Assembly (NCBI GenBank): GCA_024704765.1
Contig: JAKMXF010000199.1
Coordinates: forward strand, 372,001-436,000
DNA length: 64,000 bases
Source: Oopsacas minuta
Taxonomy: Eukaryota > Animalia > Porifera
Direction: 5' to 3'
Part shown: positions 2,492 to 49,561 of the stretch, in pieces
How positions within the stretch are numbered: the first letter of the stretch is position 1
Layout of the letters: each line of letters opens with the position of its first letter
The notes under the pieces: model-generated
What the model saw: only the letters and a program-made list of their open reading frames with translations
What the model was told of the DNA's origin: nothing
Databases searched by the model: none
Position numbers and translations under genes: made by a program

Positions 2492-2845
2492 TAAATAAAT
2501 ATAATATTATACTGCTTCGATTAACTAGAATGACAGTTAACAAGGAGACAGTGTCATAATGAGTATTCTAGTGTAATATTATGGTAAATCAAAAAGCAAT
2601 AGGAAAGTTACAAACATGATATATATTTGGAGGATTTTTTACAGTGAAGAAATTTTCAGGAAAGATGGGCAAAATGTATACTATGCAGAGATGGAATGAA
2701 ATCTGCAGTGGCACTTAGTACCCCTGGTATTGAAATTTAGAGAAGTAAAGGTTGTCTTAGAAATATATAGAAATTGGAATTCAGTGACATAACGATTGAT
2801 CTCTGTGGTAATGGTTCCACCAAACATAATACCAAAAATTATTAC

Positions 2846-3041
2846 CAAAAATTGTTTCTGATTCATTAAAGCAGGTAACCCAGATACTTCCAGAATAATC
2901 ATGAATCTCCATTGAAATCATGTAACGATATACATAGTTTGGGAAGTCCAAATTGCATTTTTCACATCGATAGAGCGTAGTGAATTCATCTTTAAACACT
3001 TTCTTTTGGCATCCATCGCTTGGGCATGATTTATAAAATAT
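2846..3041 (-). CDS. RPA1: RPA1-like exon: DBD-C with C4 zinc finger
   Basis: Translates IFYKSCPSDGCQKKVFKDEFTTLYRCEKCNLDFPNYVYRYMISMEIHDYSGSIWVTCFNESETIFG, matching RPA70 DBD-C (human MYQACPTQDCNKKV...[25 protein letters not shown]...WVTCFQESAEAILG). Acceptor ttattttag| at 3042-3043, donor |gtaata at 2844-2845; phase 0 start matches the previous exon. Confidence 0.9.
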
Positions 3042-3602: not shown

Positions 3603-6048
3603 TAGAGCATTACCGGATTAGAGATTTCCTACTCCGACCGGATCCGGGTATCCAGTGACGGATTATCCGGTTATCCTGCTAGATTGTATTACAGAATATT
3701 AAAGACCAAGGTGTATAAATTAGATTATCTGTGGGCGATCGGGCTTCTTCACTGCTAGGTTTTTGTAATAGTAGATAATTAAGTACACCACAACATTGAT
3801 ATGTATGCACATATGAATATTTAAGTGATATCAAATTTGGGGTATCGTATATATTATGTTATATTTCATTCTAAGTATTTCCATATTCCATATGAGCGAA
3901 ATTTGGTCGTTCTTCTCAATTTCTAAATAAGACTCTTCGAGAGCACTGTGCAGTGAGTGTAATGGAGATATTTCACGTGGGAAGAATTCCAAAACATACA
4001 GTACATCCCCACGGTGGAATCTTTTGAAAATTCCCATCTAGAATTATTTAAAAGCACTATCAAATCAAATCTTCTCTTCCCACATGTCGATTACAGCCAG
4101 AACAGCTTTGCAACAATGCACCAAATGTAATGGATTCAGCCATATCCAGTATTCCTCTGATCGCGCATTCTCAATCAGATCTAAGTGCAACTATTCAAGA
4201 AACGTAACATCACACATTCGAAAAACAAAAAAAGTGGCAAATTGATGATCCTCGTGCAATGGAAATTCACTATCGAATCGGAGAGATGATAGTAATTGAT
4301 AACCAACCCATTTCTATAGTTGAGAATATAGGATTCAAAGTTGATCAGCCATATTTCTCCGAGATATGAAATTGCAAGCAGAAAATACTTTCAAGAAAAG
4401 ATACTTGCGAAATTTTATGAAAAACTAGCACAATCTATCTCACAGCTTCTCAAGGACCAAAAACACATTTCCTTTCCGATATTTGGAGTGATATGCATTC
4501 AAACTTGTCATATATCAGTTTAAGCGGTCATTTCATAGATCTATCGTTTCAGAGAAGGATGTTGTACTAAATGTTAAACATTTTCCAGGTAGTCACAAAG
4601 GAGTTGCCATTTCTAATATTTTCAAGAAATGAAAGAGGGTTGGAAAATTTCCGATATCAAAGTTCATCTCCTCATTTGTGATAATGCTGCGAACATACGC
4701 CTAGGTGCGGAACTAGCTAATACTAAGAGCGAAAGTTGTTTTATACATACAATCCAATTGGCCTTAAACGATAGCATTTTCTAACAAAGAAGTATCAGAG
4801 ATATTATACATGTTAGCAGAAACATTGTCGGCCATTTTCATCACTCACCTTTAGCAACAAATCGTCTCAAAGATATTCAAAATGTGCTTGGAATTCCACA
4901 ACATAAACTAATTCAAAATGTGCGAATTCGATGGAATAGCACCTTTTATATACTATAAAGTTTGATGGAGTGAAGAAGAGCGATTGCAATGTATTCAAAT
5001 GATTTTGGAACTACAAACCTTACTCTATACCAGTGGCATTTATTTGAAATATACTGAGATTATTACAACAAATTGAGGAAGATATAAGACGATTTAGTTC
5101 CACTTCAATATCTATTTCGGAAATCATTGTCGAAGTACGAGTTCTTTTACGATACCTCGGAAAAAAAGAACTGATGAAGGAGTGCAAACAATGAAGAATG
5201 AATTAAGGAAATCTATCTAGGCTCGTTTTGTGATTGATGGAAAGATATTTACCAAAGAACATTATATAATCGCAACAATACTTGACCCCAGGTTCAAAAC
5301 TTAATTCTTTACAATTCAACAGAAAGACTATTTGGATACCATCAAGGATATGCTTATTTTGGAAATGGCGAAAGATGTAGGGCCTGAAGCTAGTTTGCCC
5401 ACAAATATAAGGGATAATTTGATAATTGAAATCGATAGCTGTGAAGCTCCGCCACCCAAGAAATCTTTAAGGGAAGATATTCATGATTCTATCATGAAGT
5501 GCTAGGATGAGATTCTAAGTGGAGCGTTAGACTACGAGAAAGAAATATCATATTTTGAGGGGGAGCAGATGAGCATTAGTCCTGGAGTGAGTCAGAATAT
5601 ACAAGAAATCATTATAAATTCCACCTTGAATGCTATTTGAAAGATCCATTACTCCCTAGATCGGGAGATCCCTTACTTTGGTGGAAATGGAATGTGGCTA
5701 TCTATTCGAATTTAGTTTCCGTTGCTGTGAAATATTTATCGGCTCCATCAAGTTCAATATACAGTGAGAGACTATTCAATACTACTGCAGGGATTATTTT
5801 CGAAGAAAGACGCAGCTCTCTTTTCCCAGAAAATGGGGAGCGATTAATATTCATTTAAAAGAACCACTCATTATTTTATTACAAATATTAGTGGTGTGCT
5901 CTAGTGCTCTAATTACTCATATTCTGTTATCGCAAATTACTTAAAATATCCGCCCGGATATTGCTTCATATCCGGCAGCATTCGGATATCCGGAAAATGG
6001 CCTGATATTGGTCGATACCGGATTTGAACCGGACTTCCGGTACAGCTA
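3603..6048 (+). mobile_element. degenerate hAT transposon (ZBED4-like transposase)
   Basis: Ends TAGAGCATTACCGGA / TCCGGTACAGCTA with CCGGA-rich subterminal repeats. Broken frames give KKWQIDDPRAMEIHYRIGEMIVIDNQPISIVENIGF, IRWNST, ATILDPRFK and the dimerisation motif LSAPSSSIYSERLF. No clear 8-bp TSD. Confidence 0.85.
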
Positions 6049-7429: not shown

Positions 7430-8440
7430 CAACCCACTTCGAAAATGTATTTTATTATTTTCATCTCTGTCTACTGAATTGAGGTACTGGTAAATTTCGT
7501 TTGCTAGCTCTTGTCTGGTATGAAATCACTGTCCTCCGAGATGTATCTTCCGCTCAGGAGATAGCCAAAAATCTCAAGGTGATAGATCTGGTGGACATGG
7601 AGGATGTTCCATCATTTCAAACCGGATATCTTCAATGACTTAGATAAGGTATTTGCATCATGAGGCCTGGAATTATGGTGAAGTTGGATTCCTCGAGTTC
7701 CTGAACGCAGACGTCATGTTTATAGACTTTTTTGACTTTTCTCAGGCATTTATCTGCGTAAAATCCTCCATTGAGTCGTTCTCCTTTAGGCACAGGTATT
7801 TGAGTCACAGGCCCATACGTATCAAAGAATATGGCGTAAAGAACCTTATCCCCTAGGAATTCCGGAAGTGACTTTTCAAGGGGGTAAAACATTATGGTAG
7901 CCATGAATTGCTTTGTTCATTACACAGAGGTTCGGAGAATTTAATCCAAGTTTCGTCACCGGTAACGATTTCAAATAACCTTCGGGAATCTGAATCTCTA
8001 TATTCTTTAAGCAAATGTTTGAAACCCTCTACTCCTTTTCCCCCTACGAGGACTTTTGTATCTATCGCGCCTAAATCTTTCGATATTCGCGATAATCGTA
8101 TAGATTTATATAAACACTTCCCGATGAGATGTCCAGGATTAGGGCAATCTCTTCAACCCTCAAATGGGGGACAATATCCAATAGTTCAAAAGGTCGGAGG
8201 TAATTTCAGGGGTGGTAGCGGAGATTAGTCTTCCTGTCTTCAATGGTGCGCCTACCAACCTTTACTTTACATGCCCATTCCTTTACAGTGGGATCCACTA
8301 GCGCTTCCCCATGATAAACCGTGACTAGATCCTCATGTATCTAGAGTGGTTGTCGCCGAGTACGGTACGAATCTCTTTGTAAGCTCGTTGTTCGGTTTTG
8401 CTCGAAATGTGTTTTGAAGTCATGAAAAAGTTGACCCTTA
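7430..8440 (-). pseudogene. old mariner transposase remnant (related to family A)
   Basis: Minus-strand fragments YAIFFDTYGPVTQIPVPKGERLNGGFYADKCL and PPDLSP*DFWL. Multiple frameshifts; TIRs not recognised. Confidence 0.8.
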
Positions 8441-9343
8441 GGTTAAAAGTAGAATATATCAAGATATATAATAGCTAGAGTGAAATGCTTAACGGCATTA
8501 AATAGGTAGACGATACTATTAGGATATACTATGAATTTCATGTAATCGAGTAGAGTCTGCCTGCTATAAACTAAGGATGGGAAGCTTTTGAATGCCCCAA
8601 GTAAATATATTTATAGGATCACATGTGCTAATGATAGAATATAGTATCAATTTTCACGCAATTGAAAGTATTTCATTCCTTTGTTATTCTAATTGCGTCA
8701 ATTCCGCATTCTACTCCATGCTATGTATATATGTGCCCCAGCATATCGTTGGACCTAGCTATGCCTATGCCAGCCATCCCTTGTTTGATTTTAGGTAACT
8801 TTTGACTATATTTTTACATGATTATATGTGAAATATCAACCAAATATAATGTTGTAAGTGCATGAATTTAAATATTTTTGTTTTGTATCTAGAATAACCA
8901 AGGATATCAGGCTAATGAAATGTGAAATGGTTTCAACAGTTCATTCCTTTGAAGCTCTCATAAATTAACTTGATGGAGTAATTTTGAATGCTCAGTGACC
9001 CATTAGATCTGATGGAGAATCCTTACACATAATCCTTCCAATTCCTTCCGATAGACTTGAAATTCCACACAGGGGAGGCGAGCGGACCCGTTGCGAATCA
9101 CTGTTAATAACGAACGATATTTGAATAAGAATTCCATTAATGATAACTCTTTAAGTTGGCTATTTAGATATGAAGGAACCTCTCTCTTCTGATAAGATCG
9201 ATTATACCGTTGACATTGGATAACACTTAAATATGAAAACAGCATGGAAGGAAAGCCCCAAATTACAAAAACTAATAAAAGTAGAATATATCAATAGACT
9301 ATATTAACTGTGTTGTATATGCTTTAACAAATAATTCTTACTA

Positions 9344-10653
9344 CAAGGGTTGTTCAATAAATAATGGGACTTCATCCAGAATGCAAAAATAAACTTAACT
9401 TATCATAATTGATTATTAAATGTTTCGATAAATTCTCCCTTTAACTTAATACATCGTTTCCATCGTTCTGGTTAGTTTTCCAGCCCAGTGGTATAGAATT
9501 CTTTAGGTTGCCATTTTCTCACTGTTTTCTTTCATACTCCAGCCGTTTGAAATCCTCAAACCTCTTCCCACGAAGAGGTCTCTTCATCTCTCCAAACAGC
9601 CAGCAGTCGTTGGGAGCCAGGTCTGGACTATACGGGGATGAGGGAGGCATTCGAATCCTAAGTTGTCAATTGCAGCCATTGTCTTGGAGCTTAAATGGAC
9701 CTTACGTTGGCATGTTGCAGCAATACGCCACGTGTCAACTTGCCTCGCCTCTCACGTTTAATCGCTTGACGCAATTCTTTCAATTCGTCAACGAAATTAT
9801 CACTGTTTATGGTTGTCTTCTCAGGCAGACACTCGAGGTGTATAATTCCTTCCCTATCTCAAAATACTGTTGCCATTCTCTTCCCTGCTGATTTTGCAGC
9901 ATTTACCTTGATGGGCACAGGTTCATCACGTTTCTTCCACTGCTTCGATTGAGTATTCCCCACTGGTTCATAATAAGGAAACCAAGTTTCATCCCCCGTT
10001 ACTATATGAGCCAAAAAGTCTTCCTCTACCTTGTATCTTGAATGTAATTCTTTGCTACCTCTGACCTTTTTGCGTTGTCTTCTTCTAGAAGGGTTTTAGG
10101 ACCCAACACGCAATTACCTCGACATTTCCAGATCTTCAGTGATAATCGAGTGTAGTGTGGCTTTTGATATACCTGCCCTCTCTTCTAACTCTCCCAGGGT
10201 TATTCGTCTGTCCACGGCCTAAATTGTTTGGACCCTCTCGATATACTCTGGGTTTTTGAGGAAGTCGGACCACCTGGATGAGGGTCATCGTGGAGTTCTT
10301 CATCGCCATTATCAAAACGTTCGATCCATCTATATAGATATGGTGGCTTTCGAAGGACATTCATCACCGAAAACACTATGCATTTCACGAAGAATGTATG
10401 AGCCAATCTTCCCTTTTTTGCCACAGGTACCAAATTATTTGTCATTTTCTTTCTTTGCTAAAATCCATTAGTTGAAAAAGGTAGCCTATACAAATGAAAC
10501 TTTATACTGAAGAATATGCTAGTAGAGTAGAGAGTATATTGTATAGAAGTTAGACAATCAAGTTAGGCTTGTAATCTGATAGTAGGCTTAGAGCTGTATT
10601 AACTAGAATTTGAATTCGATACATTAGTCTTATTACTTATTGAACAACCCTTG
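9344..10653 (-). mobile_element. mariner transposon, family C, defective copy
   Basis: TIRs CAAGGGTTGTTCAATAA at both ends with flanking TA. Frameshifted transposase on the minus strand with a PYSPDLAPND-type motif. Second copy at 20149. Confidence 0.9.
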
Positions 10654-20148: not shown

Positions 20149-21400
20149 CAAGGGTTGCTCAATAAGTAATAAGACTAATGTATCGAATTCAAATTCTAGT
20201 TAATACAACTCTAAGCCTACTATCAGATTACAAGCCTAACTTGATTGTCTAACTTCGATAAAATATACTCTTTACTCTACTAGCATATTCTTCAGTATAA
20301 AGTTTCATTTGTATAGGCTACTTTTTTCAACTAATTGGTTTCAGCAAAGAAAGAAAATGACAAATAATTTGGTGCCTGTGGCAAAAAGGGAAGATTGGCT
20401 CATACATTCTTCGTGAAATGCATAGTGTTTTCGGTGATGAATGTCCTTCGAAAGCCACCATATCCATATAGATGGATCGAACGTTTTGATAATGGCGATG
20501 AAGAACTCCACGATGACCCTCATCCATGTGGTCCGACTTCCTCAAAAACCCGGAGTAATATCAAGAGGGTCAAAACAATTTTGTACAAGGACAGGCAAAA
20601 AACCCTGGGAGAATTAGAAGAGAAGGCAGGTATATCAAAAGCCACACTACACTCGATTATCACTGAAGATCTGGAAATGTCGATGGTAATTGCGCGTTGG
20701 ACCCAAAACCTCTTTCAAAGAAGAAAAACGCGAAAGGGTCAGGGTTAGCAAAGAATTACATTCAAGATACAAGGTAGAGGAAGACTTTTTAGGTCGTATA
20801 GTAACGGGGATGAAACATGGTTTCCTTGTTATGAACAAGGGAGGAAAACTCAATCGAAGCAGTGGAAGAAACGTGATGAACCTGTGCCCATCAAGGTAAA
20901 TGCTGCAAAATCAGCAGGGAAGAGAATGGCAACAGTATTTTGAGATAGGGAAGGAATTATACACCTCGAGTGTCTGCCTGAGAAGACAACCATAAACAGT
21001 GATAATTTCGTTGACGAATTGAAAGAATTGCGTCAAGCGATTAAACGTGAGAGGCGAGGCAAGTTGACACGTGGCGTATTGCTGCAACATGCCAACGTAA
21101 GGTCCATTTAAGCTCCAAGACAATGGCTGCAATTGACGACTTAGGATTCGAATGCCTCCCTCATCCCCCGTATAGTCCAGACCTGGCTCCCAACGACTGC
21201 TGGCTGTTTGGAGAGATGAAGAGACCTCTTCGTGGGAAGAGGTTTGAGGATTTCAAACGGCTGGAGTAGGAAAGAAAACAGTGGGAAAATGGCACTCCTA
21301 AAGAATTCTATCACATTGGGCTGGAAAAGTTACCCAACGATGGAAACGATGTGTTAAGTTAAGGGGGAATTAATCAAAACATTCAATAATCAATAATGAG
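20149..21400 (+). mobile_element. mariner family C, second copy, 3'-truncated
   Basis: Left TIR TA|CAAGGGTTGCTCAATAAG; collinear with the reverse complement of 9344-10653. The last ~60 nt, including the right TIR, are missing where the family B copy begins. Confidence 0.9.
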
Positions 21401-21401
21401 A

Positions 21402-22733
21402 GTAGGGCAGTCAATAAGTCTTGCGGGAAATATCATAGAATATGATACAAAACTATATACACTAATTCACTATATTATTTATTCAAAGTAATCCCCTCAT
21501 GCAGATACACAAAGTTTTAACCTTTCCATCCATTTGTAAAACACATTTCTGTTATCTTCTTTGGGGTTGGATTTGAAGTACTGGTACAGGCCCGTTCCGA
21601 GTGCCTGTAATGTGTTAAAATCTTTGCCTTGAAGGTAGATTTTAAGCTTGGGGAATAGCCAAAAATTACACGGAGCTAGGTCTGGTGAGTATGGTGGATG
21701 AGGAAGTGATTCTAACCCTTGTACATCCAAGAAATTTTTGGTAAGCTTAGCTGTATGGGAACTGGCGTTATCAATTAAAATCTTCATTCCTCGAGTTCCT
21801 GTTTTCGGGCGGTACTTTTCTATATTTTTAATCAAATTTGGACCACTTGCTCTGTAAAGAAAGTAGCAGTAACAGCCTTTCCACTCTCACAAGGTAATTG
21901 CAAGACAATTCTATGACTACTGAAGAAGATGGTAAACATAATCTTAGGTTTTCTGAAGTCGGGCCTGGGAATTTTCGCCGCTTGTTCGTCGCCCCTTACC
22001 TATGATCGCTTCTTATACTTGCTATATGGTGTTGAATAGTACACCCACGTCTCTTCACCAGTAAAAGTCTCTGTTAGGCGTCTAGAATCGTAGTTCTCAT
22101 AAGTTTCCAAGAGTTTCTTGGCAATATTCAGTCGTACCGACCTTTGATTCTCACTGAGCTTGTGCAGGACCCATTTCACACAAATCGATCGGTAGCCAAG
22201 CTCAGTCGTCAGAATTGTATGAAGAGCTCCGATGAAATCTCTATACTTTATTCTAACTGATTGATAGTAATGCACTTGTCTTCCATGACCATACTTTCAA
22301 TGAATGTGATATTCTCTGAAGTGGTGGCGGAATCTGGTCGTCCAGATCCAGGCAAATCTGTGACATCAGCATCACCAGATCTAAAACTGGCAGCCCATCG
22401 CTCTACAATAGATCTGGAAGGGCAATCCACTCACAATATCTCCTATAACTCGCTGAAGATCTGTACGGGCTGGATCTTGAGTATTGTGCGAAACCCTATG
22501 TAAGCAAGCCATTTGAGGTTGAAATTATCATCCCTTGAAGCCATACATCCAACAGTGGGCATAAATTGACTATGCGTAACTATTTCAAAAATTCATAATT
22601 TGTATTGAATAAGCTTGAAACTTTCAGCATATGGAGTTTAACTATATCGGCTTATAATATATGAAAGTTTGTTACATTACTTGACTAATTTCTGAGATAT
22701 ATCATAACCCGCAAGACTTATTGAGTGTCCTGA
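21402..22733 (-). mobile_element. mariner family B copy 1 (defective)
   Basis: Degenerate TIRs (GGGCAGTCAATAAGTCTTGC / GCAAGACTTATTGAGTGTCCTGA), with TA at 22734-22735. Split transposase with PYSPDLAPCN. Confidence 0.9.
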
Positions 22734-25024
22734 TAAAACTCTTTATCTTTGATTTGCCTCAGCACTGTGGTGAATATGCCTTACAACCTTCGGAGCTTTC
22801 TGAATGATCTCACCAGCATCTAAGGCAAGGTTTTTGTGTGGATTTCAGACAGCCTTCAATTCCAAACTTGAGAAGGTATTAACTTAACCGTGTGACAACC
22901 ACAACGTGTATACACTGCTGAGTTTTTAGATCCTGCTAATTTGAAATAGGAGGTTTTCAATAATAATGCATTAAATCTTTTTATAATTTACTCTCGTACT
23001 AATCTTCCTATCTGATCTAGAATATTGGCAACCCAAGTATGGCTAGTGGCTGCATAAGAAGGATTTACATCGTCCAGAAATTGGCGCATACCTTCCTCTT
23101 CTACCTGAGGTTGTGGTCGTAGATCACGACATAGAACATTCAATACGTATGAAACATTCAGTCACCCCCTGTTCCATCTCAGTGAAGAGGCTTTATTGTG
23201 CTTGGCAATATTTGTTTGCGTAGTAACATGTAGTTGTAAACTGGTACTAACCTCTATTTCTTCTGTACAAATTTGAGTTGGCATTTTCTTTAGTCCAGAA
23301 AGATGAAGGTCAGTGATGTTATGCGTTGTTTTTAGATGGATTATACCAATGCTAGTGCTGTTGACAATTATCCCTTTGCAACTAGCTTACTAAATATATC
23401 TTGAGTTGGATCTGGAAATATAATTGGGTGGCAACGGTTGCAAATTATCTTGTTCTTTGACCATTGTTCATTAATCAGCTCAAAGTAATGCAACAAAATA
23501 TTGATTTTGATGGAATTGGGCGTGGTTTGCCTGGACTATGAGGCTGCTTCGTAAGTGCAGACCGAAACTGTATGTCCTCTGATGGCATCGTATTAGTTAT
23601 TGATTTGTTATGCAGTATCTATTACCGAAGAATGGTTTAGTGTATGGTTGTAATGTCAGATCAGATATATAGAGTAAAATGGTTTAAAGAAATATGTATA
23701 TATATACAGTCAAGGGACAAAAGTATTCGACCACACAAATATATTGTCATAAATTGTATACTCTTTCCCGCTCCTATATATTGTGTAGTCTATATTCGTA
23801 GCTGCAATCTAGTAATTTCCATAGAATAACGTATGTTTTTCAAGAATTTCAAAAAAATATTTTCGATTTACACTTTCTGAGGGTGTTAATTATGAATAAT
23901 TATTAGATAATTATTGATAATCAAATATGTGGTAATTCAAAGCCTATTAAGAATCTATAATTTCTGACTTGATATTTGAATTCTACGTAGGCGAGTTACC
24001 CCAGATTGAAATTTCCAATCGAATTGAACAACTTTTACCAAAGTTATAGAAGAATTCCAATTTGTGCCATTTGTGCCACCTTTTGCCCAAGGTGGCACAA
24101 GTGGCCGCTACCAAGAAGTTATTTTGTAATTCAAGGGTTAGCATAGTCAAATCATTCGAAAATAGTACTTTGACTTATTCCTCCTAACCCTAGTTGATTT
24201 CCTTGTAGTGGCGCTTTTTCCTGCCACCTGTGCCACTTTTTCAAAAAGTGGCACAAGTGGGACAAATTGAAATTCTTCTATAACTTTAGTAAAAGTTGTT
24301 CAATTCGATTGGAAATTTCAATCTGGGGTAACTCGCCTACGTAGAATTCAAATATCAAGTCAGAAATTATAGATTCTTAATAGGCTTTGAATTACCACAT
24401 ATTTGATTATCAATAATTATCTAATAATTATTGACAATTAACACCTTCAAAAAGTGTAAATCGAAAATATTTTTTGAAATTCTTGAAAAACATACGTTAT
24501 TCTATGGAAATTACTAGATTACAGCTACGAATATAGACTACACAATACATAGAGCGGGAAAGAGTATACAATTTATGACAATATATTTGTGTGGTCGAAT
24601 ACTTTTGTCCCTTGACTGTATATACTCAAAAGACTCTATAGTAAATAACAAAGTAAAAAGTATTTACAATCCTACCTTAGATAATTCCCGTTCACACGAT
24701 TGACAGGCTGTATTTACCAACTCTTTTATTTAGTATCTTAAATTACATAGTTATAACTTCTTAATAACTGTAATAGAAATTTATCAATGCTATATATTTA
24801 TGGGATAATTTCGCATTATTTCAGCTAAGTCTTACGATATTCGGTTTACCTTACCGAATACGAATACTGAGAATATGCGGTTACCTTAACTGAATACGCA
24901 TGCTGGTATACCGTTACCGCAACCGAATACCGAATGCCAATATTCGGTTGGTAACCGAATTTTGAATGATTCATCAATTATTTTTCGGTTGAACCGAATA
25001 TTGAACTATTCGGTTGCAACCTTG
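22734..25024 (-). mobile_element. 5' half of a degenerate hAT transposon (inverted)
   Basis: Minus-strand fragments LCRDLRPQPQVEEEGMRQFLDDVNPSY, CGCHTVKLI and KAPKVVRHIHHSAEA. Terminus CAAGGTTGCAAC at ~25024 with CCGAAT/ATTCGG subterminal repeats at 24835-25020. Confidence 0.75.
23707..24618. mobile_element. 912-bp foldback non-autonomous Tc1-like element
   Basis: TATATA|CAGTCAAGGGACAAAAGTATTCGACC...GGTCGAATACTTTTGTCCCTTGACTG|TATATA. Near-identical inverted arms of ~380 bp; no ORF; nested in the hAT 5' region. Confidence 0.92.
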
Positions 25025-25646
25025 GTAATTTCAACTGAATTATTAAATGTCGAGACAAACTGATGCTTTCAAAACATCGCTAAAATACGAATATTTATTC
25101 TATAATATGTTATTATACACGCCAATGATAATATATACCATATTAATAACAATTCAGAAGGATCGACACGAGATCCCTTGCCCAAAATCCATAATCAGTT
25201 TTGAATCCTTCAGTATAGCAGGCTATGGATATTCTTGAAATGTTTCATTCCTGGTCTTTACTGTTATTATAAAACTATCACTTTTTACTTACCAGGCTTC
25301 GATCGTTTATATTCGCCTATCAAAAGACGGCTTATTATACATAAGATCTTACAACTCATTTTGAATATTGAACCAGGGATGCACTTGTCCCTTGAACTGA
25401 AACTAATCAAATTTGTCTCCTGTTTGTTAATATCATCATTCCTGCGTATATAATGGGCATATATTTGTATTCAACATGCATTTTGCCATATATTGTCATA
25501 TTTTATACATTTCCCATTGCAATATGTCAAATAATATCAAACAGGTTATTAAATACCCATTAAAATCAATAAACAGTAGATACATTCTTATCTGCTTAAA
25601 GGCAACTACTATATTACGTTCACCTGCAGATAGCAGTATCAAAATA

Positions 25647-26028
25647 CAGTCCCTCCAATTTCCCATTATATTGACCTATCTTTTGCGGTCACCTGCTTAA
25701 CACGCACGGAGCCACCATTTTTTGTCCCTTACTGTCGATAAACCAGTCTATATGGCCAACTACTATATCTAACGGCCGCATTATATAGAGGTCGCCTCCC
25801 ATAAGGTCACCTATTGACAAACCCCCTGGGTGCCAACATTAACTGCTTCCATTTTAGTATCTTCAATATCGGTCACTTGGCTTTAAGGCCAATTTCTCTA
25901 TCTCTCGATCATTAACATAAAGTTCCTATAACATTGAAGTAAAACAGTCAACCCCTCTATTGCTGCTACCTGTATATAACGGCCACTTTTACCAGTCCCT
26001 TTGATGACCGTAATAGACAAGTTTGACT
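25647..26028. mobile_element. probable CAGT-ended MITE
   Basis: TA|CAGTC...GTTTGACTG|TA with repeated GG(C/T)CAC(C/T) motifs inside. The left boundary is uncertain; an internal CAGTCAAC start lies at ~25946. Confidence 0.45.
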
Positions 26029-26399
26029 GTATCTTGCTAGGTACAAACAGAAATACATTAATCAATCTACGGGATGTTGTAGCAGTTGTTTACCGAGATA
26101 CTCTTAGAAGAATTGGGCAAATTGAACTGTTTCAGTGCCCAAAGTACCGACTTTGAGTTTCGTGCTCATATATGTGTTTTGATAGTATGTTCTTTGGAAA
26201 AAGGACTGGTGCAGGGGATTCTCTACAACTGAATGTACCAATCCAGTAATCTTAGGCGAATAATTTCCATCTTGTCCATCCAGCCGAAGGATTATAATTA
26301 TCCATTCTACACACCTAATTTCATTCAACCAAATACATTATTATAATAGCTCTTCTTCTGAGTTTAATTACAGTGGAAGGATTAATACAAGGCTTTTTG

Positions 26400-26607
26400 A
26401 TATTATTTGTATTGCTAAGCAGTGGTAAGAACTGCGATTTTAAAAATCCCAAAAGGTGACAATGATGTCATAATTTGGTCATAGGTGTGAATTTCGTCTA
26501 AGGCTGGAAGTTGTCCCAACCAGGCCTAAAATATGCCTGTATGCTCAATATCAGCCCTGCGTTTTTCCTGTTTCTTCAATCAATTCTGGGCATGCAAACA
26601 TATACTG
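26400..26607 (-). repeat. truncated copy of the repeat family also at 43139 and 60619
   Basis: Minus strand TATATGTTTGCATGCCCAGAATTGATTGAAGAAAC...TAGACGAAATTCAC...CATTGTCAC is collinear with the other two copies. Confidence 0.7.
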
Positions 26608-27568
26608 TTAACTCCGCTTAATAGAGACTCATCGATTCTTGCCCTTTCGTCCCGTTTAAGCAGAGTTCTCAATTTTCAAGAGTTTTTCGATTAATCTAAA
26701 GAGTATCATTTTTCTATTTTCAGTCTTAGAGTCCCCCAATTCAAGTTACCCACTCTATTGATGAGCAATTTTGAACAGAGTATAGTGGATTGAGAGAAAA
26801 TTCAAAATTATGCTAGGGAGTCGAAATACTCACCATATTTCACGATACTGGAAACCTGCAAACTATGGCTAGATGTAACATAAAATCATTTAATGAGATC
26901 CATATTCACATGATAATTTCCCCATTTGAAATGAAAAACACTGTTGCTGAAGAGTAAACTTCTTGAAATAGTCCTTTGGTATTCCTATAAATATTTTCTA
27001 AAATGTCATCAATTTATAAACAATTTCCTTTGTTTATCACTTTCATAAAAATCTTTCACTGCTCTACAAATCCAAACTCTTATACAAGTCTTATTGACTA
27101 AGGTTTGCTGTCTATTTCAATCCATAGTATTTCCCTAATAGTACGCCGTATGATTATATACTTCGAGGTTCCTTCAGGGGAGGGAGTATTCGAAGAAGGT
27201 CCACTTGCTATTCGAGGAAAAAGGTATCTAAATTCTGCCCTATCTATCAAATATTGTATTATTTTCTTCACATTTAAGAATTGTACTTTAGTTTCGACAT
27301 TTCTTTAATTGAGCCATAGAGTTTCATTACTTCAAGTGGAATCAATATTTCAAAATGTAACTGCCCTTCTTTTTTCTAAATTATTTCGTCTCACGGAATG
27401 CGTTTTTAGATTTGTAGTAATCATATTCTATAACAAAAGTTAGATCTATATTTTGGACTATGTAAGGTTATTCGATAGAACAAATTTTAGGTGAGTTCCA
27501 GAGAAGGGCAATCTTTGCCCGGAATACATGTATTTTATATTTGTAGACCAACAAATTATCAACTATTA

Positions 27569-30065
27569 CACAGTGTGGAATTATGCGGCAATAGGTGAAA
27601 ATTTGACTTCGCTATTTACTAAAATATATGTGTGCACTCGATTTTACAATATTTCAAACCTAGAAATAGACTATTATTTGTACTTAATGAACATATAACA
27701 TGTCTAATCAAAGTCTCAAAATTTGGCTGAAATTTGGAATTGAAATCTTGAAAATCACAAATATGTATTCTTCAAATACTCATGCAATATTTCAGCATTC
27801 CTAGATCTGGTAATTCAAAATTTTTTCATTCTCAAGCACTATTACCCATATTTCAGCTCCTTAACCTACATTTTGGTCCCGATAGTTCAATTCAAGTAAT
27901 TGTGAGTTGAATAGCACAGTGTGGTAACTTTTCCTTATTTAGTTATTTCCAAGTATTTTAGACGATTCTGGCGTGAGGAATTCGATTTGTCTGTGCATTT
28001 AATGAATCGTCAATAATTTTAGCGAAAACGTCGAAATTCTCCTATTTTGATTTTCGCTTCATATTACCCATTATACATTCGCATGACATTATATTCATTT
28101 CAAATATTGATTTAGTTAGATTGATTGTTGTCTACAGATTGTATTTGTTGATGGCTGCCAGAAGAATTTGCAAGCTGTCACCAGATTCGTTTTACTATGT
28201 GTGCGGATACTACTTTGGACCAAGACAAGTCAGGCATAATATAACACCCGGTACAAAATTGTGTATTGCGTATTATGCTTATTTTGGTATGCCAATGGGT
28301 GATAAAGACAAAATGTTGTCTCCTCACTTCTTCTGTGGATCATGTCATTTGACCTTAGAAGGATGGCTACGTGGAACGTGAAAGTATATGTCATTTGCAA
28401 TACCTCGAATTTGAAGAGAGCCAGTAAACCACCATGATGATTGCCACTTTTGTATTGTAGATATTACAAAATATAAAGGAAAAAATAGAAAAAATATTGT
28501 ACCCAAACATTCCATTGTCTATTGCTCCAGTGTCGCACAATGAAGATCTGCCAATTCCGATTTCTCCTTTCTTAGAATGAACTGTTGAACCTGAGTACAT
28601 ATCTTCCAATGAAGAAGATTGTATCAGCTTCGACGAAGACTTATCATGAAAACCACACTTTCCTATTCAGCAAGAACAATTACACTTGGTTAGAGAATTA
28701 GGTCTGACAAAACCTGACGCGGAGCTTTTTAGATCTCGTCTCAGATAGTGGAATTTACTTGATCCTAGTTGTCTAGATATCTATCTATAGAAACGGCATC
28801 ATAACTTTGCATCTTTCTACAAATTTTCGCTTTCCAATCTTTGTGTTACTGTTCTGATGTGGATGGCCTTTTTAACGAAATTTGTGTGGAATACAACCTT
28901 CACATTGGCGTCTCTTCATTGATAGCTCTACAAGAGGCCTAAAGGGTGCTTTGCTTCACAATGGCAATGAATTTCCTACCATTCCGTAACTCACTCAGTT
29001 CATTTAAAGGAAAATTATGACAATGGGAAACATATGATGGAGATGATCAACTATTAAACACACAAATGGGATATTTGTGGCGACTTCAAAATGCCAGGAT
29101 TTCTACTTGGATTACAGGCTGGCTGTACAAAACATGCTTGCTTCCTTTGTTTGTGGAATGGTAGGGCAGATGACCAACACTATGGTAAAAATGATTGGCC
29201 CGTCAGAGAGGAGTTATTTCCAGGAATACACAACGTTATTCACAATGCTCTTGTTAAACCAGAGAAGGTTTTGTTGCCACCACTTCACATAAAGTTAGGG
29301 CTTGTGAAGCAATTCATCAAATCTCTGAATCCCGATAGTGATGCCTTCAAACATATACGTTCAATGTTTCCAAAAGTGTCTGAGGGGAAAGCAAGCAATG
29401 GAATCTTCGTTGGACCTCCAATTAGGCGGATGCTAGTGTTTAGCGAGGTAGAAACCAAAGTGAAAGTTGTTGAAAAGAGAGCTTGGCAAGCATTTAGGCT
29501 TGTAGTTAGTGGATTTTGGGAAATAGAAAGTCATAAAACTATGAAGAACTCGTTGATAACTTAATTGGGCAAGTTTTCAACATCAAGAATGTAGAATGTC
29601 ACTCAAACTACATTATTTACACTCACACTTGGGCTTTTTAGTCTAAATTTGGGAGATGTGAGCGAAGAACAAGGTGAACCTTTCCACCAAGTTATGTTAG
29701 TAGTGAAGAATACGTATCAGGGAAAGTGGGACGAACGTATAGGAGACTACTTGTGGTGTTTGATATGCGATGCTCCGAGTATACACAAAAGAAAAGGGTA
29801 AAAACAACATTTTAACTTAACGTCACTTTTACGTTATAAAGTATACTATTGATTATAATACTGTAAATGTCTAATTTTTAAGGAATGCATTCGTATTTAG
29901 AAGATTCCCTAGCATTTGTTTGGGGGATGAAATATGATATAACATGTATTTTGTATTTATTGGAGAAGTTTCGATTCTGATCTAACCATGGATGGATATT
30001 CACAAATATTGCTACTTGTGATATCCATGCGTCTTAAAGTAGTGGGGAAAAAACTCAAATTTCGA
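27569..30065 (+). mobile_element. Chapaev3-like DNA transposon, degenerate, right end missing
   Basis: Begins TTA|CACAGTGTGG. Broken transposase with CKLSPDSFYYVCGYY...AYYAYFGMPMGDKDK..PHFFCGSC and GLQAGCTKHACFLCLW...LLPPLHIKLGLVKQFIKSL, motifs I associate with Chapaev3. Cut off at the mariner starting at 30068. Confidence 0.7.
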
Positions 30066-30067
30066 TA

Positions 30068-31389
30068 TCAGAGCGTTCAATAAGTCTTGCAGGTGATGAT
30101 ATATCCCAGGAATTAGTCAAGTAATGTATCAAACTTTCATTTGTTAGAAGCACATATAATTAAACTCTTTATACTGAAAGTTTCAAGCACAAATTATGAA
30201 TTTTTTGAAATAGTTACGCATAGTCAATTTATGCCCACTGTTGGATGTATGGCTTCAAGGGATGATAATTTCAACCTCAAATGGCTTGCTTACTAGGGTT
30301 TCGCACAATACTCAAGATCCAGCCCGTACAGATCTTCAGCGAGTTATAGGAGATATTGTGAGTGGATTGCCCTTCCAGATCTACTGTAGAGCGATGGGCT
30401 GCCAGTTTTAGATCTGGTGATGCTGATGTCACAGATTTGCCTGGATCTGGACGACCAGATTCCGCCACCACTTCAGAGAATATCACATTCATTGAAAGTA
30501 TGGTCATGGAAGACAAGTGCATTACTATCAATCAGTTAGAATAAAGTATAGAGATTTCATCGGAGCTCTTCATACAATTCTGACGACTGAGCTTGGCTAC
30601 CGATCGATTTGTGTGAAATGGGTCCTGCACAAGCTCAGTGAGAATCAAAGGTCGGCACGACTGAATATTGCCAAGAAACTCTTGGAAACTTATGAGAACT
30701 ACGATTCTAGACGCCTAACAGAGACTTTTACTGGTGAAGAGACGTGGGTGTACTATTCAACACCATATAGCAAGTATAAGAAGCGATCATAGGTGAGGGG
30801 CGACGAACATCCGGCGAAAATTCCCAGGCCCGACTTCAGAAAACCTAAGATTATGTTTACCATCTTCTTCAGTAGTCATAGAATTGTCTTGCAATTACCT
30901 TGTGAGAGTGGCAAGGCTGTTACTGCTACTTTCTTTACCGAGCAAGTGGTCCAAATTTGATTAAAAATATAGAAAAGTACCGCCCGAAAACAGGAACTCG
31001 AGGAATGAAGATTTTAATTGATAACGCCAGTTCCCATACAGCTAAGCTTACCAAAAATTTCTTGGATGTACAAGGGTTAGAATCACTTCCCCATCCACCA
31101 TACTCACCAGACCTAGCTCCGTGTAATTTTTGGCTATTCCCCAAGCTTAAAATCTACCTTCCAGGCAAAGATTTTAACACATTACAGGCACTCGGAACGG
31201 GCCTGTACCAGTACTTCAAATCCAACCCCAAAGAAGATAACAGAAATGTGTTTTACAAATGGGTGGAAAGGTTAAACTTCGTGTATCTGCATGAGGGGAT
31301 TACTTTGAATAAATAATATAGTGAATTAGTGTATATAGTTTTGTGTCATATTCTATGATATCACCCGCAAGACTTATTGAACGCCCTAG
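30068..31389 (+). mobile_element. mariner family B copy 2 (defective)
   Basis: TA|TCAGAGCGTTCAATAAGTCTTGC...GCAAGACTTATTGAACGCCCTAG|TA. Same split transposase as copies 1 and 3. Confidence 0.93.
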
Positions 31390-33064
31390 TAGCTGCTGAA
31401 ATTGATGAATCACAATACAAGCTATTTCAAAACAATGACCTAAGGTGGAATTCGACTCATGATCTGATTTGAAGTGTCATTAATAAATTTAAATCACTAA
31501 GGATTTATTCATTGAAGCATCCAGGAAAAAATAACGGAATTCAATTCTGCTAAAGAATAAGTTTTGATACACTGTTACGGGATACTTTCCCACTTTAAAT
31601 GGGTCACAAAAATATTGCAAGGTGATTACCCTACCATTTCGATTTACTATCCGTGTGTGAAACTATTGTTAATCTGTAGAAGATGTTCATCCATTATTAA
31701 TTATGATCTCGGGAGATCATAATAGTGTAAACTAGGTCGGGTCGAACTAAATAGCCTGGTTACAGAAGTACGTGAGAAATTCCTTGTTGCTGTACAAGAA
31801 ATGTTCGATACAAAATTCCCTATTGATTGATAGGCATGCAAGCTTCTAGGACCCAAGATGGAAGTCTCTGAGCTTTCTTGAAGAATTAGATAGAGAAGAA
31901 ATTAATATGGAGTTAATAAATGATTTTTGGCGTATTTGGAATGGAGAAAGCTAACTGAGGCATAAATTGGAAGAGATGGACAAAGTTCAACACCTCCTTC
32001 TCTTGCAGGAAATGTATCCAAGCTTAGTGAAGAAGTCGGAAATTTCTTGTTGTGAGCCGTCGAGGAATCAAATATAGTTGGAATCAATATTGATAATCAT
32101 ACAATTAGCATAGAAACTCTAGGATTGATTGCTAACCTTGAAGAGGAATTGAAGTACTACAAAGGATTGCCCAAAGTAGATAATAACTCTGATTCCATTT
32201 GTTGACGTGGTGGGGGAGAAAGGTGTAATTCCACAAACTTTAAAGACTAGGTTACATGTCCAGTGTTGTTCATGCAAACGTAGCATCCAGTGCAGCCGTT
32301 GAAAGACCATTTAGTACAGCAGGCAGAATAGTTAGCAGGGATAGAGTGAACACTAAGCCTCAACGCGTAGAGAAAATTCTATTGGCACATAAAAATTAAG
32401 ATTTATGGCTGCAAGATGATTAGGAGAGAAAGAAATTTTTTCCCGGCTAATCTTGGATATTTAGAAAATCTGTCATGTGGAAAACACTCCCAAGTTTGCT
32501 TAATGAAACAAAATCAGGAGAAGCAAGGGAAATGGACCCCGAAGAATCAATTTTGACCACTAGATAACCGAACTTCGTACTAGTACTTGTCTCGCAATTT
32601 ATAAGTCTCCTAGCATATTACTGTAGCATCTAGCACATTATTTTTATAAGTGAAACAAGTTAAAGTTGAAAATTATAACCAACTACGCACTTGTTTATAA
32701 AATATATTGGATAATAATGTTCAAAATCACTGATTTAATGACTTAATATTATGATTATTATCACTTCATTAGTATTTGTATTCGGTTGAAGCAACTGAAT
32801 ATTATCCATATTCGTATTCGGAATGAGTAACCGAATAGTTACGGCATTCGTATTCGGTTGAAGTGATTAAATATTATCAGTATTTGTATCCGGTTGAAGT
32901 AACCGAATATTATCAGTATTCGTATTCGGTATGAGTAAGCGAATATTATCAGTATTCGTATTCGGTATGAGTAAGCGAATATTATCAGTATTCGTATTCG
33001 TTTTAGTATTCGGTAAGACAGCTATTCATGAATACTGATATTCGTTTTGGCGGTTTCAACCTTC
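31390..33064 (+). mobile_element. 3' half of a degenerate hAT transposon
   Basis: AAEIDESQYKLFQNNDLRWNSTHDLI, LLGPRWK (LDPR-like) and ASSAAVERPFSTAGRIV. Subterminal ATTCGG repeats and the terminus GTTTCAACCTTC. Confidence 0.8.
32770..33010 (+). repeat. subterminal tandem repeat (36-bp unit) of the hAT element
   Basis: GAATATTATCAGTATTCGTATTCGGTATGAGTAAGC is exact at 32905-32940 and 32941-32976, with partial and diverged units on both sides. Confidence 0.9.
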
Positions 33065-33378: not shown

Positions 33379-34677
33379 CAGAGTTAGGCATAAGTTCTGC
33401 AACAAGCATAAACTAGTATATTTCTTATTTTACCATAATAGTAGTTGAAATTCGTAATGAATTAGTGAATATACATACTAAGGATACGAAATTATTCTAG
33501 CACTTCGAATGTATTGCCCTTTGCTGCGATACATAGGCTCAATTGCTTATAGAAATTTTCGACAGCAACACGCAACACGTCCTCACTGATTAAATCCCAC
33601 TCTCTTCTCAAGGAAGACTTCAGACTTTCGACATTCTTGTGAGGCTTTGCACATACCCTGGACTCTAAGATGGACCATATACAGAAATCCATAGGGTTTA
33701 GATCTGGAGAAGAGGCCGGCCATTATTCAGTTGATATAAATTCCGGTACATTGAGTTTCAACTACTCAGATGTCATTTTGGCTTTGTGGGAGGGAGCGGA
33801 ATCTTGCTGGAACACCCAATGCGCGCCATTGAAGTGCTCACCAGCCCAAGGCTTCAATGCGTTCTCTAAAATGCTCTCTACATACACCTCTTTGTAAATT
33901 TTCACCCCTTTATCAATGAGCACCAGAGGTGTCCGACCATCAGAGGAAATAGCTCCCCAAACCATGACCGATGCAGGTTTCTGAGTTCGTTTAATTGTGC
34001 GTATTGATGACGATATAGACCTTCGATCTGGGGCAAGAATTCGACTGTTTTGGCGATTACATGTCATTTCTACGGTAAAAATCTTCTCATCGGAGAAGAC
34101 AATGCTCTGGTGCGTGCCACCAGTGAACCTTTTTCCCAGAATCAGACATTTTTCATACCTACGCATCTTATTCACCTCAGAAAGTAACTGTACCCCTCGA
34201 AATTTGTAGCATTTCAAGCCTAAATACTCTTTTACTATCCTCCCCATACTGGTTAAAATATTGAAGTCTTTTGCCATGCCTTGGATGCTTCTGACAGGAT
34301 TCTTCCTGACCTTCTCCCGGACGAGCTTCCTAACAGCAGGAGTCCGAACAGAATGAGGTCTACCTTTTCTGAACCTGTCCTGGGTACAGCCAGTCTCCTT
34401 GTAACGTTTGATTGTACGGTAGACTATCCATCTGTTTATGGACAGTATTTTTGATATTACGGAAGCTGACTTGCCTTCATTATGATACAAGATTATCAAT
34501 GACCGTTTTGCCTCTTTGTCCATAAATTAAAAAATTTTTCTAGTAGGACTCAATAGTCCAAATATTGTTTATAAAGATATTGAAGATAACATATGATAAA
34601 TAAAATATTCACCTAAAACCATTCGCAGAACCTCTAGCTTAATTTCAATTTTGTTGCAAAACTTATGCATAACCCTG
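33379..34677 (-). mobile_element. Tc1/mariner superfamily element with DD37D triad (maT-type)
   Basis: TIRs CAG(A/G)GTTA(G/T)GCATAAGTT(C/T)TGCAACAA. The transposase at 34523-33492 is one 344-codon frame with two in-frame stops: FSDEK, QQDSAPSH, then 37 residues to the D of SPDLNPMDF. Confidence 0.88.
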
Positions 34678-48228: not shown

Positions 48229-49561
48229 TCAGGGCGTTCAATAAGTCTTGCGAGTCATGATATATCTCAGAAATTAGTCAAGTAATGTAACAAACTTTCA
48301 TATATTATAAGCCGATATAGTTAAACTCCATATGCTGAAAGTTTCAAGCTTATTCAATACAAATTATGAATTTTTGAAATAGTTACGCATAGTCAATTTA
48401 TACCCACTGTTGAATGTATGACTTCAAAGGATGATAAATTCAACTTCAAATGGCGAGCTTACATAGAGTTTCAGGAAATAATCAAGATCCAGCCCGTACA
48501 GATCTTCAGAGAGTTACAGGAGATATTGTGAATGGATTGCCCTTCCAGATCTACTGTAGAGCGATGGGCTGCCAGTTTTAGATCTGGTGATGCTGATGTC
48601 ACGGATTTGCCTGGATCTGGAAGACCGGTATCCGTCACCAATTCAGAGAACCTCGCATTCATTGAAAATATGGTCATGGAAGACAAGTGCATTACTATCA
48701 ACCAGTTAGAATAAAGTATAGAGATTTCATCGGAGCTCTTCATACAATTCTGACGACTGAGCTTGGCTACCGATCGATTTGTGTGAAATGGGTCCTGCAC
48801 AAGCTCAGTGAGAATCAAAGGTCGGCACGACTGAATATTGCCAAGAAACTCTTGGAAACTTATGAGAACTACGATTCTAGACGCCTAACAGAGACTTTTA
48901 CTGGTGAAGAGACGTGGGTGTACTATTCAACACCATATAGCAAGTATAAGAAGCGATCATAGGTAAGGGGCGACGAACAAGCGGCGAAAATTCCCAGGCC
49001 CGACTTCAGAAAACCTAAGATTATGTTTACCATCTTCTTCAGTAGTCATAGAATTGTCTTGCAATTACCTTGTGAGAGTGGCAAGGCTGTTACTGCTACT
49101 TTCTTTACAGAGCAAGTGGTCCAAATTTGATAAAAAATATAGAAAAGTACCGCCCGAAAACAGGAACTCGAGGAATGAAGATTTTAATTGATAACGCCAG
49201 TTCCCATACAGCTAAGCTTACCAAAAATTTCTTGGATGTACAAGGGTTAGAATCACTTCCCCATCCACCATACTCACCAGACCTAGCTCCGTGTAATTTT
49301 TGGCTATTCCCCAAGCTTAAAATCTACCTTCAAGGCAAAGATTTTAACACATTACAGGCACTCGGAACGGGCCTGTACCAGTACTTCAAATCCAACCCCA
49401 AAGAAGATAACAGAAATATGTTTTACAAATGGGTGGAAAGGTTAAAACTTTGTGTATCTGCATGAGGGGATTACTTTGAATAAATAATATAGTGAATTAG
49501 TGTATATAGTTTATGTATCATATTCTATGATATCACCCGCAAGACTTATTGAACGCCCTAG
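48229..49561 (+). mobile_element. mariner family B copy 3 (defective)
   Basis: TA|TCAGGGCGTTCAATAAGTCTTGC...GCAAGACTTATTGAACGCCCTAG|TG. Same lesions as copies 1 and 2. Confidence 0.93.

Follow-up and report, generated by a model that had tools for sequence, protein, structure and literature searches.

Two mariner transposons of opposite orientation lie a few kilobases apart in the genome of the glass sponge Oopsacas minuta, and each of them adjoins one part of a hAT transposon. The question raised by this locus is whether the two hAT parts once formed a single element, and, if so, what divided it. The locus was analysed within a stretch of 64,000 nucleotides (assembly GCA_024704765.1, contig JAKMXF010000199.1, positions 372,001 to 436,000), hereafter the window, to which coordinates refer unless a contig is named. 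The first-pass annotation had proposed that a mariner inserted at a TA in one hAT and that the stretch 22734-30067 is now flipped between opposed mariner copies, a proposal that our results support. The features are listed in Table 1.

Table 1. Features at and around the flipped block, in window coordinates.
Feature	Position	Strand	Remarks
Family C mariner, 3'-truncated	20150..21399	plus	final 63 bp missing, the 3' inverted repeat with them
'ga' replacing TA	21400..21401		TA there in 9/11 other family C copies; presumed mutated mariner B target
marL, mariner B copy	21402..22733	minus	3' tip adjoins family C mariner, 5' tip adjoins hAT half A
TA target duplicate, marL 5' tip / hAT half A	22734..22735
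hAT half A	22736..25024	minus	5' terminus 25024, BED-like finger, CxxH and HHS motifs, break at 22736
Fold-back insert within hAT half A	23701-24624		about 920 bp; marked by inverted repeats
Single-copy intron DNA, original hAT 5' flank, now inverted	25025..26860		self match only in genome
Two short dispersed repeats	26861-27452 and 27559-27914		many copies, 74-87% identity
Element eY, unclassified ('Chapaev' in the first-pass annotation)	27915..30065	plus	cut 33 bp before the ...GCATTGTG terminus
TA target inside eY, before marR 5' tip	30066..30067		same TA in 8/9 uninterrupted eY copies, TG in 1
marR, mariner B copy	30068..31389	plus	5' tip adjoins eY, 3' tip adjoins hAT half B
TA target duplicate, marR 3' tip / hAT half B	31390..31391
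hAT half B	31392..33064	plus	RWNST, hAT C-terminal dimerisation domain, 36-bp subterminal repeats, 3' terminus 33064
Third mariner B copy, same local lineage as marL and marR	48229..49561	plus	95% identity to marR

Two halves of one hAT element

Joining the reverse complement of 22736-25024 through one TA to 31392-33064 keeps the reading frame (...aga gtt tta gct gct gaa...), as had been noted before, and brings the motifs into the normal hAT order of BED-like finger, CxxH, HHS, RWNST and C-terminal domain. The last of these, at 32244-32396, scores 30.3 bits against PF05699 (cut-off 21.4). When 600 bp on each side of the join were searched against the genome as DNA, either half returned its self match only, and the join was therefore examined at the protein level. 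Querying the rebuilt hAT by tblastn with 18 long ORFs of other hAT families in the same genome gave nothing usable, these families being too distant. By contrast, four hAT copies of the same genome that have open frames across the join point align to the rebuilt element without a gap, and neither extra nor lost residues were found at the join relative to these four. Over the 21 residues past the join, with the part before it anchored, zero offset yields 7-9 identities, versus 0-4 at other offsets. On contig C102, a degraded relative matches the two halves collinearly, with a single offset for both.

The ends of the rebuilt element show the short terminal inverted repeats (12 of the 14 terminal nucleotides match) and the matching subterminal repeats of a hAT transposon, the latter being of the ATTCGTATTCGG type and present on both halves, in line with the first-pass annotation. 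The 8-bp flanks, where a hAT target-site duplication would lie, are GAAATTAC and TAATTAAC and agree at five of eight positions, a match with an estimated chance of about 6% in AT-rich DNA. Because rejoining restores the spacing seen in the relatives, one hAT took one mariner, and the segment stands in flipped orientation in this assembly, with half A, at a mariner 5' tip, inverted and 8.6 kb upstream of half B, at a mariner 3' tip. The alignments thus show an old, dead hAT copy that was struck by one mariner B at a TA in the transposase region. That the halves are instead two unrelated truncated hAT copies beside two independent mariner insertions, with no inversion, is extremely improbable. 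The one point in its favour is the general density of such elements in the genome, which holds at least 771 candidate hAT domain matches and at least 266 mariner candidates, and it is opposed by the shared ends and the self-only DNA matches described above, and by the complementarity of the halves to the nucleotide at one TA, with 0 overlap and 0 gap.

The mariner pair and its local relatives

The termini of the mariner B family were set from 30 genomic copies as TA-TCAGGGCGTTCAATAAG...CCCTAG-TA, most copies having TA on both sides, and the boundaries of the two opposed elements of about 1.3 kb, as first annotated, coincide exactly with them. Elements of the family are 1322-1337 bp long and carry terminal inverted repeats in the Tc1/mariner range of about 25-30 bp (TCAGGGCGTTCAATAAGTCTTG, with a near-complement at the 3' end). 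The TA duplication typical of Tc1/mariner insertion is found at three of the four mariner B flanks at the breakpoints, the exception being the 'ga' at 21400-01. The coding frames are fragmented; the DDE_3 profile scores 27.8 (marL) and 26.6 bits, under its cut-off of 28.6, and the HTH_48 of Mos1 profile scores 13.4 bits.

Over the full alignment marL and marR are 97% identical, with an uneven distribution of differences: complementarity is 99% between the arms 21516-22498 and 30294-31276 and 85-93% in the outer parts. The private changes of marL are concentrated at positions 6, 8 and 9 of the inverted repeat and in the final 28 nt of the element. In marR, the first 134 nt contain 11 private substitutions, a 9-bp deletion and a 1-bp insertion, and lie about 12% off the family consensus, as opposed to 1-2% in other copies. 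Some 45 variants are common to marL, marR and the third local copy and are absent from, or very rare among, 27 other copies. These common variants form a mosaic among the three, which points to repeated exchange. The marL 5' edge and the marR 3' edge resemble the third copy, and the marR 5' edge and the marL 3' edge are dense with private changes, a division into clean and dirty edges that is expected of reciprocal chimeras.

A family B copy usually has its nearest relatives close by on its own contig, lying in the same or the opposite direction, and additional copies near an existing one are therefore to be expected. Inverted sister pairs are found on contigs C364 (4865-9054; 99.9% identity, 1.5 kb apart) and C77 (844860-875342; 99.2%, 28 kb apart), and another nearby inverted pair lies on C314 (230816-250570). 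The DNA flanking the C364 pair matched no reference copies. Since some copies share 99.4% identity across contigs, the family was active recently.

Near-identical inverted repeats may also mislead an assembler. The assembly was made by hybrid SPAdes from Illumina and corrected PacBio reads, followed by SSPACE, Pilon and GapFiller (PMC10280926), and the arrangement is known from this one assembly, with a single match for each hAT half. The genome could thus be collinear, the assembler having crossed between copies in the near-identical core and flipped the middle block in silico. The real order would then be a minus-strand mariner flanked by the family C mariner and eY, the reverse complement of eY, the unique DNA, hAT half A, a mariner and hAT half B. 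Between inverted repeats the orientation of an enclosed block is ambiguous in a de Bruijn graph, identical runs in the cores reach about 270 bp, and the edge pattern is equally compatible with a path switch. Nevertheless, repeats of 1.3 kb are far below the PacBio read length or mate-pair span, about 20 differences mark the cores, and the breakpoints are free of gaps and N runs, with 0 N runs in the whole window. We consider such an artefact unlikely, though to be taken seriously.

The outer junctions and the intronic setting

The junctions on the far sides of the two mariners have a different character. The family C and 'Chapaev' sequences at these positions had been taken as element ends, a reading that does not hold, since both elements are cut internally. 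Eleven other family C copies run on beyond the cut with TA AGTATAGG...GAACAACCCTTG and then TA, which rules out a family C mariner that ends near 21400 in a degenerate inverted repeat. The X junction (21399/21401) falls at a TA within the family C mariner, at position 1250, and the Y junction (30065) at a TA within eY. A Pfam search of the eY ORFs (157 and 86 aa) gave no match. X and Y are, judging from these copies, two mariner insertion junctions at different target sites and not element ends. At X, two substitutions without an indel would account for the sequence more simply than microhomology (GTA/TAGG) with a 3-nt loss.

The two internal cuts and the hAT site imply that the junctions of three target sites are borne by two mariners, and a deletion is therefore needed in addition to the inversion. 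That the other junction fails to reconstruct, with an extra deletion implied, was foreseen in the first-pass annotation and is borne out: X joined through TA to the reverse complement of Y rebuilds no site, and the window contains neither an orphan family C tail nor that of eY.

The flipped block lies inside the RPA1 gene. On the minus strand, this gene covers C199:463930 to 352717 or beyond, and an exon for its C-terminal domain lies at window positions 2844-3041. The intron that holds the flip is huge and filled with transposons. Between hAT half A and eY, in the unique and short-repeat DNA of 25025-27308, five ORFs of 60 aa or more were compared with Pfam, and no recognisable exon was found among them; to this extent the earlier statement that no RPA1 exon lies in the flip stands, the check not being exhaustive. 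The flip lies in an intron and should be neutral for RPA1. The AT and GC skews of 25025..26860 fall in the lower tail of the window (14th and 3rd percentiles), a weak hint, not decisive, of an opposite ancestral orientation.

Origin of the flip and comparison with known systems

On balance, and with modest confidence in the account as a whole, we regard ectopic recombination among locally hopped mariner B copies as the most likely cause of this arrangement. Family B mariners would hop locally, and further copies would have inserted nearby in the opposite orientation, with eY and the family C mariner receiving one each. The flip of 22734-30067 would then have come from homologous recombination between inverted mariner copies, which spared every junction between transposon and flank and left each mariner a chimera reciprocal to the other. 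The tails of the family C mariner and of eY, with whatever DNA separated them, may have been lost in a second exchange, this time between two direct copies, or in a flanking deletion made by transposase. Arm-to-arm gene conversion would hold the mariner cores about 99% alike, the edges having drifted.

Several observations argue for this account. Inverted homologous copies are present at both breakpoints, and one split insertion site is rebuilt, the rejoining being in frame and gapless against the four relatives and in agreement with the collinear C102 copy. Both inner junctions have clean TAs without an excision footprint, as expected if the breaks fell inside the repeats, and the TA sites of Y and X are present in uninterrupted eY copies and in family C copies, respectively. 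The mosaic of common variants and the pairing of clean and dirty edges point the same way. Against it, the reciprocal flanks do not rebuild one site, and a second event is therefore assumed. Also adverse are the strong divergence of the first 134 nt of marR, for which the account gives no full explanation, and the altered X junction, where 'ga' stands for TA and the first inverted-repeat base is changed. The edge pattern and the flip are also what an assembler path switch in the near-identical core would give, which tells against recombination as the cause.

Mariner transposase itself might also have produced the flip. In hybrid-element or alternative transposition, the mariner 3' end of one sister chromatid and the 5' end of the other enter a nearby TA together after replication and yield an inverted block between two inverted copies of one element; the deletion on one side, reaching to the TA within the family C mariner, would then stem from a second aberrant event of this kind. 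A single original insertion suffices for this course of events, four of four junctions fall exactly at mariner tips beside TA target positions, and both the recent activity of family B and the recurrence of its nearby inverted sister pairs (C364 and C77) are in keeping with it. The copies should, however, begin identical, and marL and marR differ by about 12-15% at their edges and by about 1% in their cores. One coordinated event moreover predicts that X be contiguous with the reverse complement of Y, which it is not, and the frames of all local mariner B copies are broken. We judge this explanation quite unlikely. In its strongest form, in which mariner transposase acting on sister-chromatid ends made both the flip and the flanking deletion and the pairs on C364, C77 and C314 are further products, it is very doubtful; if true, a Tc1/mariner family would be reshaping the genome of a glass sponge through aberrant transposition.

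The flip is an event of a known and ordinary kind, a rearrangement mediated by transposons that calls for no new mechanism, and no effect of it on RPA1 is apparent. It provides a base-level example of how nested DNA transposons allow an old rearrangement to be reconstructed, and suggests local interplay among transposon copies in the Oopsacas minuta genome, through hopping, conversion and recombination. The locus is useful as a test of local assembly correctness and of the presence of both orientations in the population.

Three known systems offer points of comparison. P-element hybrid element insertion and alternative transposition of Ac/Ds, with sister-chromatid or reversed ends, can generate an inverted block between inverted copies and also one-sided flanking deletions that run from exactly the element tip to a target site. 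The inverted block and one-sided deletions of the present locus are compatible with such products. It differs from them in the strongly diverged mariner edges and in having two new junctions at two target sites, and it is known from sequence alone. With gene conversion between the arms of palindromes or inverted repeats the locus has in common the near-identical cores, the diverged edges and the mosaic of variants, here over three neighbours. Its arms, unlike those of long palindromes, are transposon copies of 1.3 kb, for which repeat polishing during assembly could partly mimic the pattern.

A parallel to the preferred cause is provided by ectopic recombination between inverted transposon copies, which makes inversions such as the Galileo-flanked inversions of Drosophila buzzatii. 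In contrast to these, the flip described here spans 7.3 kb, is intronic, involves a Tc1/mariner family in a glass sponge and is known in one arrangement, and its second pair of flanks rebuilds no site, so that a further deletion is needed. It shares with the Galileo-type inversions the inverted homologous copies at both breakpoints, the intact junctions, the swapped flanks and a pair of flanks that rebuilds an insertion site.

RPA1 setting and the opposed mariner pair

The glass sponge Oopsacas minuta has a genome assembly of 61.46 Mb in 365 contigs with ~36% G+C; the published assembly is described as 365 scaffolds, ~61 Mb and 36% G+C (PMC10280926). RPA1 lies on the minus strand and spans ~111 kb, with introns packed with transposons, and the entire window falls within the gene. 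First-look counts are high for a "compact" 61-Mb genome: candidates number at least 771 for hAT domains, at least 266 for the mariner family studied here (mariner B) and at least 167 for a second one (family C).

Features of the rearranged region and related copies. Bare coordinates are window positions; C199 is the contig containing the window, and C364, C77 and C314 are other contigs of the assembly.
Feature	Position	Strand	Remark
marL, left mariner B	21402-22733	-	1.3 kb, opposed to marR
marR, right mariner B	30068-31389	+	1.3 kb, opposed to marL
Third mariner B copy	48229-49561	+	nearby relative, in RPA1
Family C mariner	20150-21399	+
Family C relative	9340-10652	-	in RPA1
Element eY	27915-30065	+
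eY relative	C199:453952-456126		in RPA1
hAT half A	22736-25024	-
Fold-back insert in half A	23701-24624		~920 bp; arms 94-100% complementary, centre ~156 bp
hAT half B	31392-33064	+
Tc1/IS630-like transposase ORF, directly right of hAT 3' end	33492-34523	-	253 aa; HTH_29, HTH_23 and HTH_Tnp_IS630 above cut-offs
hAT copy of a family related to the split hAT, same intron	4797-4940; C199:377625-377864	+	57-aa open frame over HHS...RWNS
Inverted mariner B sister pair (L038, L037)	C364:4865-6193; 7725-9054	-; +	99.9% identical
Inverted mariner B sister pair	C77:844860; 874008	+; -	99.2% identical
Inverted mariner B sister pair	C314:230816; 249258	-; +	97.9% identical
RPA1 N-terminal domain exon	C199:463637-463930	-
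RPA1 C-terminal domain exon	2844-3041	-
RPA1 C-terminal domain exon	C199:352717-352902	-

Mariner B displays Tc1/mariner features (TA duplication, ~28-bp inverted repeats and 1.3-kb length), and its transposase profile scores fall slightly below the Pfam cut-off because the reading frames are broken. The termini, defined on 30 genomic copies, are TA, TCAGGGCGTTCAATAAG...CCCTAG, TA, and the boundaries that the first-pass annotation had assigned to marL and marR coincide with them exactly. The two copies are 97% identical overall; their complementarity reaches 99% over the central 983 nt and 85-93% in the outer ~120 nt.

A hAT element split at one TA

Half A adjoins the 5' tip of marL and half B the 3' tip of marR, each via a TA. 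Joining the reverse complement of A to B through one TA yields a badly decayed element of 3964 bp that contains each hAT landmark once and in the usual order: a BED-like finger, CxxH, HHS, RWNST and the C-terminal dimerisation domain (PF05699, 30.3 bits). The outer ends of the halves have 12 of their first 14 nt in common and share one subterminal repeat motif. The match of the 8-bp flanks, at five of eight positions, is uninformative.

A DNA-level search of the genome found no second copy of this element, and relatives were located by protein-level searches. Both halves find their match on a single strand of a degraded copy on contig C102, at an offset of 3306 on either side of the join. This copy, those on C352 and C339 and the one at window 4797-4940 have open frames over the join position and align without gaps to the rebuilt element from IIxxxxxxVxHxHHS through RWNS. 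When the 26 residues before the join were anchored and the 21 residues after it were slid against the relatives, 7-9 identities were obtained with zero residues added or removed and 0-4 at all other offsets. The rejoining in frame proposed by the first-pass annotation is thus borne out, and the comparison with other genomic copies that it called for reveals no extra sequence at the join in the four relatives. Judged from sequence, A and B are a single hAT copy split at one TA by one mariner insertion. The rejoin tests rule out two truncated hATs that lie side by side by chance.

The second junction

At the other side of each mariner, the first-pass annotation had placed the ends of the family C mariner (21400) and of eY (30065), which it labelled "Chapaev"; eY has no Pfam match. 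Comparison with other copies shows that both elements are instead cut internally. Eleven other family C copies extend 63 bp beyond the 21400 site (TA AGTATAGG...GAACAACCCTTG, then TA). At this junction (21399/21401) 9 of the 11 show TA against "ga" in the window, and the C of the family B inverted repeat is replaced by G. The best reading is that a mariner B inserted into the family C element at an internal TA and that the junction later acquired two substitutions. Likewise, nine other eY copies extend 33 bp past the position of the TA that follows 30065, to ...GCATTGTG, and eight of them read TA at that position. Both tails are absent from the entire window.

As read from these copies, marL and marR bear junctions from three distinct TA target sites, one each in the hAT, in eY and in the family C mariner, and a single inversion is therefore insufficient. 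An inversion together with loss of the stretch carrying both tails can explain the junctions. The reading as an inversion of 22734-30067 is supported for the assembly in its present form, with the account of the second junction corrected. The block comprises transposon remains and 1.8 kb of single-copy DNA; in 25025-27308, five ORFs with a length of 60 aa or more were tested and have no Pfam match.

Origin of the rearrangement

The simplest ancestral order that accommodates every junction would start with the main part of the family C element, a mariner (-), the family C tail, intervening DNA, the eY tail and a second mariner (-), and continue with the reverse complement of the main part of eY, short repeats, the 1.8 kb of single-copy intron DNA, half A, mariner (+) and half B. 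An exchange between the two mariners in direct orientation would delete both tails, and recombination of the remaining minus copy with the plus copy would flip 22734-30067; deletion first or flip first would both yield the present map.

The mechanism is probably ectopic recombination. Homologous exchange is favoured by the untouched TAs, the local lineage of the mariners, their mosaic structure, their edge pattern and the additional nearby copies to be expected. Both inner junctions retain an intact TA with no excision footprint. The three mariner B copies in the window have ~45 variants in common that are absent from 27 other copies or present in very few of them, and therefore constitute a local lineage. 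Within it, marL matches the third copy at mariner positions 1-165 and marR at 166-465, and all three are alike at 466-1272. The 5' edge of marL and the 3' edge of marR are clean, the 3' edge of marL has 5 changes in 28 nt, and the 134 nt of the 5' edge of marR (30068-30201) combine 11 private substitutions with a 9-bp deletion and a 1-bp insertion; such a pattern is to be expected of reciprocal chimeras between a clean element and a worn one. These 134 nt lie ~12% from the family consensus, versus 1-2% in other copies, and still have three lineage-specific variants. Candidate explanations of their divergence are error-prone repair, a polishing artefact or conversion with an unsampled copy as donor.

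Additional nearby copies are expected because the nearest relative of the 30 sampled mariner B copies is usually a same-contig neighbour, in either orientation. For mariner B, family C and eY alike, the closest relative lies near, inside RPA1: similarity is 95-97% among the mariner B copies here (elsewhere at most 93%), 94% for the family C pair and 99% for the eY pair (elsewhere at most 89% for both), a pattern suggestive of hopping or gene conversion on a local scale. Inverted sister pairs also occur on three other contigs, and the C364 pair has the tip-to-tip layout of marL and marR.

Transposase action, by hybrid-element insertion or alternative transposition, would produce the same topology with junctions likewise at TAs, but this route is rated lower: it predicts copies identical at birth and a contiguous target at the family C and eY junctions, neither of which is seen. 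Alternatively, a path switch in the near-identical inverted-repeat core could have flipped the block in silico and would yield the same clean and worn edges, in a hybrid assembly that SPAdes built from Illumina together with corrected PacBio reads, with SSPACE used for scaffolding and Pilon and GapFiller for polishing (PMC10280926). The repeats are, however, short (1.3 kb), with ~20 core differences and without gaps, and such an artefact is unlikely. The single-copy block has a composition skew that leans to the opposite ancestral orientation, which fits a flip but does not separate a real one from an artefact.

The rearrangement, for which ectopic recombination is the preferred reading, should be selectively silent, and represents an event of a known kind in a new host.
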